From Trichosphaerium sp. ATCC 40318 (lineage: Eukaryota; Protista; Tubulinea), in NCBI GenBank assembly GCA_038496445.1, contig JALMLS010000062.1, positions 620,001-684,000 on the forward strand: a stretch of 64,000 bases of DNA, in the 5' to 3' direction. Positions 33,079 through 62,766 of this stretch are shown here, piece by piece. A program made the translations under genes and the position numbers. Position 1 is the stretch's first letter. Every line of letters begins with the position of its first letter. The notes below the pieces were generated by a model that worked only from the letters and a program-made list of their open reading frames with translations, had not been told where the DNA came from and did not search any database.

Positions 33079-33467
33079 TTAGCAGCTTCCACAAGCAGCT
33101 TCACTCCAGCAACACCATTTATCACTTCTGATACGGAAGCACAATGGAGATCCAGGGTAGCAGTATGCAGTTGAACCTATCAAAATAAACGTGAGATACT
33201 GAACAACACATTTTTCTTTTCACATACATTGACCATTCTTTTCACGACCACGTTTACGCCATCCAGGAGGACACCATCCATTTGTATCACATGTTTCACC
33301 ACACAACAGTGGTCCTTGCTAAATCGTATGTTAGAATACAAAGTAAGTGCTGCTGTTAGACTTACTTCAGTTGCTCGTTTAGCTCTTTCACTGAGCTCTT
33401 TAGATTGGACCGCCAAGGCAACAGCTAATGCCATGAGTACAAAAGCGAAAAGTGTTGTTGTTTGCAT
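33079..33467 (-). CDS. Secreted 10-Cys prepropeptide, leader type A, copy A1 (3 exons)
   Basis: MQTTTLFAFVLMALAVALAVQSKELSERAKR-ATE | QGPLLC...KNGQ | CSTAYC...AACGSC*; both introns GT-AG. Confidence 0.9.
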
Positions 33468-33774
33468 TGTTCTATGAGGTGTAGTTGTTCTTGTTATGGT
33501 TTTTATTTATGACTGGAAGGTCAATATGATTTAAGTCTCACGTGAAATGTTACGGTAAATTTTATTGTAAACACAAATATAATAGCGTTTCTGTTCTCTG
33601 TATTGATACCAAAGAGATTATGGATAAAAAGTTTAGCGAAAAAGAAATGAGGTAAAACGACTTATGATACTTTATTTCACTGAATACAACACTTAACTTA
33701 AACTGGATTTCTAAGTGCACTCAAACCAAAATACAAAACAACAACCAACGACAAACCTCTTCTTCAAACAACAA
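33468..33774. promoter_or_regulatory. Bidirectional promoter of peptide pair 1
   Basis: 307 bp between divergent ATGs; sequence blocks conserved with 35375-35716 and 62012-62345. Confidence 0.7.
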
Positions 33775-34188
33775 ATGAACACAACAATATTATTTGTATT
33801 GGTGACTTTGGCGTTGATACCAATTGCCTTGACGACCCAATCTAAAGACTCTGAAGAGATGCCAGATATGCACGAAAAAAGATCAACTGAGGTATGTCGA
33901 CACTTGCTACTTTTACTTTCAGTATGTTAATTAACATGCGGTTTAGCAAGGACCACTATTGTGTGGTGAAACATGTGATACAAATGGATGGTGTCCTCCT
34001 GGATGGCGTAAACGTGGTCGTGAAAAGAATGGTCAATGTATGTGAAAATCAAAGGTTGGTAGCAGACTTCTAAATACTTACCTTTATTAGGTTCAACTGC
34101 ATACTGCTACCCTGGATCTCCATTGTGCTTCCGTATCAGAAGTGATAAATGGTGTTGCTGGAGTGAAGCTGCTTGTGGAAGCTGCTAA
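33775..34188 (+). CDS. Secreted 10-Cys prepropeptide, leader type B, copy B1 (3 exons)
   Basis: MNTTILFVLVTLALIPIALTTQSKDSEEMPDMHEKR-STE, then the same exon 2-3 core as A1. Confidence 0.9.
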
Positions 34189-34569
34189 GATCTTGGCACT
34201 CCAATATGAATGTAAAACTAAATAAAGTACCCAAGTTTTACTACTATTCGTTTTCATAGTTAGGCTGCATTGTTTACAGTTCCAATTTCAACAAGAAACA
34301 CATTTTGTGAGCAATCGAATAGACAGCGCATAAACCAATAAGCTAGGCTAAATACATTAGCCATCCATGAAATTGCGCTTTGCAGACACCGGTTTACAGT
34401 AAACGTGAAACACACTGTTCAATCACTAAAACAACGTTCAACGTAGAGCAAAGTAAGCAGTACAGACTTACATTCACATTTTGAGCAAGTGATACCACAT
34501 CCAGGCAGGAAATGGCATCCCATTGATTTCTGCCTTTGTAGTCCAATCTGATTAGCTTAGAACTGTGAG

Positions 34570-34750
34570 AGCATGTCCCATTTTTGTGTAGTAGAACATG
34601 CCTCCTGGATGGAGTAGGCAAGTTCATGAAAAGCGTTACAGTTTATGCACAAACCAGGTTGCCCACTAGTATGCTACTACCCTGGATCATTACTAATAAT
34701 CTACTAATACCTAGAGGTGCTGCTGGAATGAGGCAATTGGCTGTCAGCAT
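34570..34750 (+). pseudogene. Decayed paralog of the 10-Cys peptide core
   Basis: Fragments PFLCSRTC, PPGWSRQVHEK, CYYPGS and CCWNEA, with frameshifts and stops. Confidence 0.65.
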
Positions 34751-34976
34751 GGATCACCTTGAACACTGAAACTTAATTAAATTATACAACTAAGACTTGT
34801 TAGTGCAACAAAAGCATGTAATAGTTCATTGAGACCGAAACATATGTGACTGATATTTATGCTACATTTTGATATAACCAGCACTTTAGTTAGTAAACTG
34901 TAGTCTGATCTACTTGTTGGTACTTTTATTGATTCTTTACAATGATATATGGTACAACAAGTAATGCTTTGCGATC

Positions 34977-35374
34977 TTAGCAGCTTCCACAAGCAGCTTC
35001 GCTCCAGCAACACCATTTATCACTTCTGATACGGAAACATAATGGAGATCCAGGGTAGCAGTATGCAGTTGAACCTAATAAAGGTAAGTATTAAAGAAGT
35101 CTGCTACCATTCTTTGGATTTTCACATACATTGACCATTCTTTTCACGACCACGTTTACGCCATCCAGGAGGACACCATCCATTTGTATCACATGTTTCA
35201 CCACACAACAATGGTCCTTGCTAAATCGTATGTTAGAATACAAAGTAAATGTAACAGCAGAACACGACTTACTTCAGTTGCTCGTTTAGCTCTTTCACTG
35301 AGCTTTTTAGATCGTACTGCCAAGGCAACAGTTAATGCCATGAGTACAAAAGCGAAAAGTGTTGTTATTTGCAT
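34977..35374 (-). CDS. Secreted 10-Cys prepropeptide, leader type A, copy A2
   Basis: MQITTLFAFVLMALTVALAVRSKKLSERAKR-ATE plus the identical core. Confidence 0.9.
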
Positions 35375-35716
35375 TGTTCTATGAGGTGTGGTTGTTCTTG
35401 TTATGGTTTGTATTTATGACTGGAAGGGCGAGATGATTTAAGTCTCACGTGAAATGTTACGGTAAATTATATTTGCTTTAAAATCGTAAGTCTACTTACA
35501 AAACCCAGATAGAATAGCGTCATTTGTTTTGGTATATTGATGGCTAACGATCGCGGAGCAATTGGTGGATTTAGCGAAAAAGAAATGAGGTAAAACGACT
35601 TATGATACTTTATTTCACTGAATACAACACTTAACTTAAACTGGATTTCTAAGTGCACTCAAACCAAAATACAAAACAACAACCAACGATAAACCTCTTC
35701 TTCAAACAAACAACAA
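35375..35716. promoter_or_regulatory. Bidirectional promoter of peptide pair 2
   Basis: Homologous to 33468-33774. Confidence 0.7.
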
Positions 35717-36124
35717 ATGAAAACAACAATGTTATTCGTATTGGTGACTTTGGCGTTGATACCAATTGCCTTGACAACCCAATCTAAGCACGCTCAAGAC
35801 TCTGAAGAAATGCCAGATATGCACGAAAAGAGATCAACTGAGGCACTTGCTACTTCTACTTTGTACATGACTAACATATGGTTTAGCAAGGACCATTGTT
35901 GTGTGGCGAAACATGTGATACAAATGGATGGTGTCCTCCTGGATGGCGTAAACGTGGTCGTGAAAAGAATGGTCAATGTATGTGAAAAGAAAAATGTTGT
36001 TCAGTATCTCACGTTTATTTTGATAGGTTCAACTGCATACTGCTACCCTGGATCTCCATTATGTTTCCGTATCAGAAGTGATAAATGGTGTTGCTGGAGC
36101 GAAGCTGCTTGTGGAAGCTGCTAA
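35717..36124 (+). CDS. Secreted 10-Cys prepropeptide, leader type B, copy B2 (intron-1 GT donor lost)
   Basis: B leader plus an intact core. An 8-nt deletion (tatgtcga) turns GAG|GTATGT into GAG|GCACTT. Confidence 0.75.
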   Translation: MKTTMLFVLVTLALIPIALTTQSKHAQDSEEMPDMHEKRSTEALATSTLYMTNIWFSKDHCCVAKHVIQMDGVLLDGVNVVVKRMVNVCEKKNVVQYLTFILIGSTAYCYPGSPLCFRIRSDKWCCWSEAACGSC

Positions 36125-61618: not shown

Positions 61619-62011
61619 TCAGCAGCTTCCACAAGCAGCTTCGCTCCAGCAACACCATTTATCACTTCTTATGCGAAAGCATAGTGGAGATCCAGGGTAG
61701 CAGTATGCAGTTGAACCTATCAAAATAAACGTGAGATACTGAACAACACATTTTTCTTTTCACATACATTGACCATTCTTTTCACGACCACGTTTACGCC
61801 ATCCAGGAGGACACCATCCATTTGTATCACATGTTTCACCACACAACAGTGGTCCTTGCTATACAAACAATAGTTAGAAAAGGAAATGTAAGAGGAGATC
61901 TTGACTTACTTCAGTTGCTCGTTTAGCTCTTTCACTGAGCTCATTAGATTGGACCGCCAAGGCAACAGTTAATGCCATGAGTACAAAAGCGAAAAGTGTT
62001 GTTGTTTGCAT
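61619..62011 (-). CDS. Secreted 10-Cys prepropeptide, leader type A, copy A3
   Basis: MQTTTLFAFVLMALTVALAVQSNELSERAKR-ATE plus the identical core; TGA stop. Confidence 0.9.
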
Positions 62012-62345
62012 TGTTCTATGAGGTGTGGTTGTTCTTGTTATGGTTTGTATTTATGACTGGAAGGTCAATATGATTTAAGTCTCCATTTCACTTGAATTTT
62101 ACGGTAAATTATATTTGTTTCACTATCGTAAGTCTACTTTGCAAAACCCAGATAGAATAGTGTTGTTGTTTTAGTATATTGATGACTAACGATCATGGAT
62201 AACAAGTGTTGGATTTAGCGAAAAAGAAATGTGGTAAACAGCTTATGATACTTTTATTCAGTGAATATGAAGACTTAAATCGTCTAAGTGCATTCAAACA
62301 AAACCAATTTACAAAACCTCAACCAACAACAAACCTCATCTTCAA
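62012..62345. promoter_or_regulatory. Bidirectional promoter of peptide pair 3
   Basis: Homologous to the other two spacers. Confidence 0.7.
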
Positions 62346-62766
62346 ATGAAAACAACAATATTATTTGTATTGGTGACTTTGGCATTGATACCAATTGCCT
62401 TGACGACCCAATCTAAGCATGCTCAAGACTCTGAAGAAATGCCAGATATGCACGAAAAGAGATCAACTGAGGTATGTCGACACTTGCTACTTTTACATTG
62501 TATTGTTAATTAACATGCGATTTAGCAAGGACCACTGTTGTGTGGCGAAACATGTGATACAAATGGATGGTGTCCTCCTGGATGGCGTAAACGTGGTCGT
62601 GAAAAGAATGGTCAATGTATGTGAAAATCAAATATTGGTAACACTTCTTTAATACTAACCTTTATTAGGTTCAACTGCATACTGCTACCCTGGATCTCCA
62701 TTATGCTTTCGCATAAGAAGTGATAAATGGTGTTGCTGGAGCGAAGCTGCTTGTGGAAGTTGCTAA
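62346..62766 (+). CDS. Secreted 10-Cys prepropeptide, leader type B, copy B3
   Basis: MKTTILFVLVTLALIPIALTTQSKHAQDSEEMPDMHEKR-STE plus the identical core. Confidence 0.9.

Follow-up and report, generated by a model that had tools for sequence, protein, structure and literature searches.

Pair-specific synonymous haplotypes in divergently paired secreted-peptide genes of an amoeba, probably arising by short-tract gene conversion between adjacent copies

Interlocus gene conversion between adjacent paralogues is a known process. Arm-to-arm gene conversion occurs in sex-chromosome palindromes of the human and ape Y and of the primate and mouse X (PMC3723533, PMC8600007, bioRxiv 10.1101/800185), interlocus conversion has been described for the head-to-head hsp16-1/hsp16-48 modules of Caenorhabditis elegans and for other adjacent inverted or tandem paralogues (PMC3966223), and partial conversion for the head-to-head paired receptors SIGLEC11/SIGLEC16 (PMC5701461). 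The gene family described here, from Trichosphaerium sp. ATCC 40318, is new. The window, that is, the whole stretch of DNA that was analysed, comprises 64,000 nucleotides (nt) of contig JALMLS010000062.1 (C12:620001-684000) and contains three head-to-head pairs of small three-exon genes, each consisting of an A gene and a B gene with different leader exons (exon 1) and nearly identical exons 2 and 3. Synonymous variants in exons 2 and 3 were found to sort by pair and not by leader class, and this pattern is likely explained by exon homology retained through selection together with short-tract gene conversion between adjacent copies.

As in the sex-chromosome palindromes, inverted repeats enclose a non-repeated spacer, non-reciprocal exchange has left the arms more similar to each other than to paralogues elsewhere, and occasional inversion of the spacer is a possible side product. 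Unlike those palindromes, whose arms span 10 kb to 1.4 Mb at >99.9% identity, the arms here are about 240-400 nt long and enclose about 630 nt of spacer, which holds the genes' own divergent first exons and promoters; identity is patchy (present in the exons, often absent from intron 2), GC bias is absent, and non-palindromic neighbours convert too. The likeness to hsp16 lies in small divergent pairs with a possibly common intergenic promoter region, in duplication of the module, in short conversion tracts that can include small introns, and in conversion that takes place in direct and inverted orientation alike, as in other adjacent paralogues; an hsp16 module, however, consists of two different genes, and homogenisation takes place between modules, whereas here it acts on the partners inside one module and affects the last two exons only. 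With SIGLEC11/SIGLEC16 the family shares conversion confined to the part encoding a common domain while the rest remains functionally distinct, but there the two genes encode vertebrate receptors, are separated by about 9 kb and convert over about 3 kb, while the present system consists of many copies of a 0.4-kb peptide gene, the distinct part being the signal and propeptide exon. This case is distinguished by its small scale, by tract ends that are plain to see, by divergent leaders and by chimeric products.

Family loci were collected from the eukaryotic assembly (70 Mb, 642 contigs) by whole-assembly searches with each exon separately, and the matching loci were then extracted; positions in contigs are given below with a C number and those in extracted loci with an L number. 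A full-length match to exon 2 was present at 48 loci, and 30 copies with exon 2 at least 94% identical were defined as the core family. The genome-wide set of head-to-head pairs comprised 12 pairs, located on contigs C12, C96, C40, C99, C27, C149 (two pairs), C465, C287 and C224. The family consists of about 46 three-exon genes, mostly laid out as divergent A/B pairs, whose product is a secreted prepropeptide with 10 cysteines. Exons 2 and 3 are 91 and 98 nt long and 95-100% identical across the family, whereas the A leader (34 codons) and the B leader (39 codons, or 42 where a 3-codon HAQ insert is present, as in B2 and B3 of the window) are only about 67% identical. The two leader exons share one ancestor, and their homology is still recognisable; KR-x-TE forms the end of both leaders.

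Six matches to a 50-nt exon-2 probe were detected in the window, none being expected by chance, and these formed three minus/plus pairs: pair 1 (33079-34188), pair 2 (34977-36124) and pair 3 (61619-62766). In all three, the left, minus-strand gene carries the A leader and the right, plus-strand gene the B leader, with 307-342 nt from ATG to ATG. Exons 2 and 3 of each pair form inverted repeats of 109-122 nt that are 95-98% complementary (33212-33333/33932-34053 and 33075-33184/34083-34192 in pair 1, for example), so the layout that had been read from the sequence in an earlier note, with every A gene paired divergently with a B gene and exons 2-3 as inverted repeats, is present throughout the window. 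The spacer of about 630 nt between the arms is made up of intron 1A, exon 1A, the intergenic centre of 307-342 nt, exon 1B and intron 1B.

Among the six window copies, 12 of the 189 sites in exons 2 and 3 varied, all of them synonymously. Eight of these sites were informative, and seven sorted by pair (exon 2 position 10; exon 3 positions 35, 38, 41, 44, 47 and 74), while one, exon 2 position 21, sorted by class and was common to B2 and B3. The same note had proposed pair-wise sorting from a set of codons, and these were all found in place: both arms of pair 1 carry ttg tgc ... agt, both arms of pair 2 carry tta tgt ... agc and also cca ttg ttg, and both arms of pair 3 carry tgc ttt cgc ata. 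A1 and B1 were identical at 98 of 98 positions in exon 3 and at 90 of 91 in exon 2; A2 and B2 were likewise identical in exon 3 and differed once in exon 2. For distances and trees, the columns of exons 2 and 3 were set side by side. The six-copy tree of exons 2-3, rooted on a diverged family member, recovered all three window pairs, and approximately unbiased (AU) tests rejected both a clade of the A genes (p = 0.015) and a clade of the copies with the X type of intron 2 described below (p = 0.005).

The excess similarity of partners extended to the genome-wide set of 12 pairs. Within-pair identity exceeded that of shuffled partners in exon 2 (0.983 vs. 0.970, p = 1e-4), exon 3 (0.972 vs. 0.952, p = 1.5e-4) and intron 2 (0.84 vs. 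0.79, p = 0.009), and no within-pair excess over shuffled partners was seen in these pairs for exon 1, the upstream region or the 3' flank. Since duplication of the A/B unit without exchange predicts that any A gene is equidistant from any B gene, this excess points to exchange between partners. Among the 29 other copies, the nearest or tied-nearest one was the partner in 15 of the 24 paired genes, and this held for all six window copies.

The trees agreed with the expectation that exon 1 would split by leader class and exons 2-3 would group by pair. The exon 1 tree separated an A clade (support 100/99) from a B clade (100/100). For exons 2-3, leader class was distributed at random over the tree (10 changes vs. 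9.9 when shuffled), whereas the pair label was clustered (15 changes vs. 19.6, with none of 200 shuffles as low), and an A clade was rejected (log-likelihood difference 42, AU p = 0.007). The exon trees of this family fail to record its duplication history. A pairwise homoplasy index (PHI)-type test of exon 2-intron 2-exon 3 was significant (p = 0.0005; 477 of 1,081 site pairs incompatible). For the search for shared fragments, our own implementation of the Sawyer/GENECONV criterion was used instead of the GENECONV program. The A/B pair on C27 shared a run of 96 polymorphic columns that was globally significant (p = 0.01), and several fragments between neighbouring B genes reached p ≤ 0.01. 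The whole-gene run test was dominated by the A-versus-B differences in exon 1 and intron 1 and, besides C27, mainly reported sharing within a class.

The exon structures, derived from exon matches with GT..AG borders, delimit the shared parts of the window pairs. Gene A1 (33079-33467, minus strand) comprises exon 3 (33079-33176), intron 2 (33177-33227), exon 2 (33228-33318), intron 1 (33319-33365) and exon 1 (33366-33467), and gene B1 (33775-34188, plus strand) comprises exon 1 (33775-33891), intron 1 (33892-33946), exon 2 (33947-34037), intron 2 (34038-34090) and exon 3 (34091-34188). In pair 2, A2 (34977-35374, minus strand) consists of exon 3 (34977-35074), intron 2 (35075-35129), exon 2 (35130-35220), intron 1 (35221-35272) and exon 1 (35273-35374), and B2 (35717-36124, plus strand; leader B with HAQ) of exon 1 (35717-35842), intron 1 (35843-35886, starting with GC), exon 2 (35887-35977), intron 2 (35978-36026) and exon 3 (36027-36124). 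In pair 3, A3 (61619-62011, minus strand) contains exon 3 (61619-61716), intron 2 (61717-61767), exon 2 (61768-61858), intron 1 (61859-61909) and exon 1 (61910-62011), and B3 (62346-62766, plus strand; leader B with HAQ) contains exon 1 (62346-62471), intron 1 (62472-62525), exon 2 (62526-62616), intron 2 (62617-62668) and exon 3 (62669-62766).

Between the arms of the window pairs, intron 2 was only 67-72% identical, whereas the exons flanking it were 97-100% identical. X and Y are two old types of intron 2, X being present in A1, B2 and A3 and Y in B1, A2 and B3; intron 2 of A2, for instance, matched that of B1 (Y) at 0.91 and that of A1 (X) at 0.71, and intron 2 of A3 was identical to that of A1 at 51 of 51 positions. 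This mismatch of introns inside the pairs indicates short tracts limited to the exons, without copying of the whole arm. The idea that the arms of each palindrome convert each other is thus borne out in one respect, as the trees and the shuffling tests demonstrate non-reciprocal exchange between partners, and has to be narrowed in another, as the arms in the window were not converted in full.

Longer tracts were found elsewhere. In four of the 12 pairs (C27, C96, one of the C149 pairs, and C40) the arms were near-identical through non-coding sequence, with intron 2 at 94-100% identity, which is not explicable by selection on the peptide. The tract in the C27 pair begins 26 nt 5' of exon 2 and ends about 30 nt downstream of the stop codon, a length of about 300 nt with a single mismatch; intron 2 is 100% identical in the C96 pair and 98% identical in the C149 pair, and in the C40 pair over 80 nt of the 3' flank belong to the shared tract. 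Intron 1 of the A gene changes from A-type at the 5' end to B-type at the 3' end in both the C27 and the C96 pair, which indicates that the tract came from the B arm. The shared tract of the C99 pair stops 17 nt into intron 2, beyond which the A gene is of the X type.

Tracts also appear to have run into exon 1. Chimeric leaders, in which an A-type signal peptide is joined to a B-type propeptide, were identified in the C465, C287 and C224 pairs and in an unpaired copy at C12:684992-685398; the four copies are located at L001:4992-5398 (the unpaired one), L010:3200-3599, L011:2564-2944 and L012:3223-3623, and in the paired cases the partner is a B gene. In the three chimeric pairs the B-type propeptide runs on into partner-like sequence, and overrun of a tract into exon 1 would yield such leaders. 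The proposal that the two leaders stay distinct agrees with the clean A and B clades of exon 1 but not with the chimeras in three B-partnered pairs and one unpaired copy.

A further claim, that conversion keeps the mature peptide uniform, was not supported. The mature peptide was identical in all six window copies, and the core family exons showed a synonymous divergence (dS) of 0.21 and a nonsynonymous divergence (dN) of 0.0014, giving a dN/dS of about 0.007. The unlinked C65/C15 subfamily, separated from the core family by a dS of 0.57 and a dN of 0.023, encodes essentially the same peptide. Because copies that are both unlinked and so diverged still encode nearly the same product, uniformity does not need conversion; it is due to very strong purifying selection.

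The favoured explanation thus combines selection and conversion as separate agents. Purifying selection on the peptide would keep exons 2 and 3 alike and thereby leave homology blocks of about 90-100 nt, which short-tract, homology-limited gene conversion would use, most often between physically adjacent copies. The adjacent copy is usually the head-to-head partner, and pair-specific synonymous haplotypes would result. Where neighbouring introns are similar, tracts would continue through intron 2 and into intron 1 and the 3' flank, with an occasional reach into the propeptide half of exon 1 giving the chimeric leaders; where the old, dissimilar intron types face each other, as in the window, tracts would end at the exon borders. 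The underlying repair is presumably double-strand-break repair or template switching with the nearest homologous copy as template; what normally shields the leaders is presumably the heterology of intron 1 and exon 1.

Several observations weigh against this explanation or reduce its support. A 40-nt part of exon 3 contains six of the seven pair-sorting sites, which correspond to roughly one haplotype block per pair, not to seven independent events, so that the evidence from the window amounts to about one 40-nt block per pair and one exon-2 site. The 12 pairs are not fully independent, some loci being diverged related duplicates (92-96% identical), and five of them differ at 5-9 sites and are no closer than random copies, which shows conversion to be episodic. 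No sign of GC-biased conversion was found, the GC content at third codon positions being 0.277 in exons 2-3 and 0.384 in exon 1. In addition, within-pair identity rests on a single assembly.

If the explanation is right, the family gives a base-pair view of how a high-copy secreted-peptide family evolves in a little-studied amoeba lineage: selection would fix the peptide, and the surviving homology would channel short tracts between neighbours, the ends of which are visible in introns and chimeric leaders. With at least 12 pairs of differing homogenisation ages, it would also be a compact natural system for studying the minimal homology and the tract length of mitotic conversion in an amoeba.

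Adjacent copies are usually head-to-head partners, and one alternative takes the layout itself as the cause: the inverted arms would interact by fold-back or intrachromatid pairing, like those of sex-chromosome palindromes, and would both convert each other and cross over reciprocally, which inverts the centre. We consider it improbable. Mean distance was indeed lowest between head-to-head partners (3.8 differences in 186 nt), followed by tail-to-tail neighbours (4.6), other copies at the same locus (6.2) and copies at other loci (7.2). Both head-to-head partners (p = 8e-5) and tail-to-tail neighbours (p = 0.008) were closer than copies at other loci, but the head-to-head and tail-to-tail distances did not differ significantly from each other (p = 0.21). 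Further, in a direct tandem B-then-A pair of a diverged subfamily with the C-terminus ...CGQTC (L026:2394-3963; C99:139-141 kb), exon 2-intron 2-exon 3 is nearly identical between the two genes although their leaders differ. The homogenisation of this tandem and of tail-to-tail neighbours indicates that an inverted arrangement is not required, and the simplest rule is that a stretch that is still similar gets corrected against the nearest copy.

Tail-to-tail neighbours occur in higher-order palindromes of pairs, in which a minus-strand A and plus-strand B gene are followed by a minus-strand B and plus-strand A gene (L007:2280-5318, L004:2021-4968, L003:2478-4799 and L006:76-2260). The inner B genes of these arrays are tail-to-tail at a distance of about 0.7-0.95 kb; in L003 and L007 they share long identical runs in exon 1-intron 1, and only fragments are left of one outer A partner in L004 and L006.

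Arm crossovers were also considered in view of the linkage of flank, intron and leader types in the window. There are two families of 3' flank (U1 and U2), two types of intron 2 and two leaders, and each window pair carries complementary types, in three linkages: U2'-X-A|B-Y-U1 in pair 1, U2-Y-A|B-X-U1' in pair 2 and U1-X-A|B-Y-U2 in pair 3. Crossovers between the arms in exon 2 or 3 would produce such a pattern, and rare inversions by arm crossover have been documented for the human palindrome P6 (PMC3723533). Ectopic exchange explains these 'isomers' equally well, however: across the genome, the 3' flank types U1, U2 and U3 occur in shuffled combinations with the leaders, and the body of B2, from the HAQ insert to the flank, matches at 90-95% the unpaired copy 29 kb away (C12:684992-685398 = L001:4992-5398). 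Flip-flop inversion as the cause of the X/Y swap fits the window pairs but is not claimed, given the family-wide reshuffling of types and this match of the B2 body. A broader, rather unlikely proposal is that the A/B module is a maintained recombination architecture, whose inverted blocks would convert and cross over, flip the centre and re-deal promoter/leader cassettes over an invariant peptide body, with conversion running mostly from B to A and the inverted layout protecting copy number. The polarity is suggested by the tract ends in C27 and C96 and by the chimeras of A-type signal and B-type propeptide, and copy number would be protected by the layout since an exchange between arms leads to inversion and not to deletion of DNA. 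If this were true, flips of the centre would account for the three 'isomers' of the window.

An artefact of assembly or polishing, in which mis-mapped reads from one arm or from other copies made the arms alike, is unlikely, and we assign it a very small probability. With about 46 near-identical copies and several short contigs that resemble uncollapsed duplicates, the possibility deserved consideration. Mis-mapping among 46 copies should, however, pull sequences towards the family consensus and not create pair-private haplotypes; the tracts of identity are sharply bordered by strongly diverged introns and leaders within the same 1.1 kb; and arms of about 240 nt and a spacer of about 630 nt are far below the length of long reads. 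The exon-3 haplotypes of pairs 1 and 2 were, moreover, found without mismatch in separately filed cDNA contigs, which may or may not be independent of the assembly sample. These contigs came from one public run, cover a 0.06 share of the stretch and inform on splicing and RNA haplotypes, not on DNA structure. Assemblies of such loci nevertheless need long-read confirmation, and short reads cannot give copy-specific expression.

Hardly credible, finally, is a history without any transfer between arms, in which a recent inverted duplication was followed by import of a leader through ectopic conversion, or in which selection on synonymous sites acted alone: leaders, introns and flanks clearly do move between copies, and the synonymous divergence of exons 2-3 is low relative to the X/Y intron divergence, but all 12 pairs would need the same independent outcome (an A-type or chimeric leader together with a B), the A-to-B transition within intron 1 of the C27 and C96 A genes places the entry of the tract in the partner's B arm, and codon selection can yield neither pair-private variants nor identical introns.

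The intergenic centres are located at 33468-33774 (pair 1, 307 nt), 35375-35716 (pair 2, 342 nt) and 62012-62345 (pair 3, 334 nt). The centre of pair 1 is a divergent region composed of an A-type and a B-type upstream region, without symmetry of its own. Upstream identity between the two arms of pair 1 was 0.65, compared with 0.79-0.89 among A upstreams and 0.75-0.95 among B upstreams, and the B-side 140 nt of the pair 2 centre (35570-35709) and 33632-33771 of pair 1 shared 99% identity. Between pairs 1 and 2, a decayed exon-2/exon-3-like relic is present on the plus strand (34578-34753), with a 19-nt deletion relative to exon 2 (local alignment score 57 vs. a shuffled maximum of 49).

The cDNA contigs indicate that the genes are expressed and spliced: intron 2 was spliced out in one contig (joint 33174->33226), and exon 1B was joined to exon 2. 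One contig, which carries a template-switch oligo, terminates at about 33728, a position 47 nt 5' of the B1 start codon. Its 4-nt insertion relative to B1 indicates that it derived from a paralogue, and the position is likely the 5' end, or transcription start, of a B-type mRNA. Exons of both orientations were covered by contigs that match several copies, and the A and B upstream halves were unrelated. The intron 1 donor GTATGT is deleted, leaving GC, both in B2 (35843-35886) and in the unpaired copy at C12:684992-685398 (L001:5115-5158), and these two copies may either use GC-donor splicing or be pseudogenes; a cDNA contig that matches more than one copy joins 35842 to exon 2.

As to the product, KR is present near the end of each leader and an internal RKRGREK stretch in the peptide. 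Searches with single exons as queries gave no Pfam or NCBIfam family at E ≤ 10, and exon 3 alone gave no match among PDB sequences and a best feature score of 0.84 in the ESM Atlas, under the reliable range; a gallidermin look-alike with this score was dismissed as lying in the range of noise.

Three contig pairs were 98-99.9% identical over 1.7-3 kb, namely L019/L020 (C584/C15), L008/L012 (C524/C224) and L023/L024 (C152/C480). Uncollapsed haplotigs or segmental duplications of very recent origin may account for them, and possible haplotigs among the short contigs affect the family copy counts. Broken copies were also present, including a 1-nt deletion in exon 1 of the L003 A gene (L003:4405-4505), a frameshift in exon 2 (L008:23-264) and in-frame stops at L025:1901-2294 and in exon 1 of L024:2390-2491. 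In addition, one head-to-head pair (L022:2555-4243) consisted of two genes with the same A-type leader, the arms of which diverged only in the middle of intron 1, being near-identical between a point about 60 nt upstream and the end of exon 1 and again from exon 2 to the stop codon.

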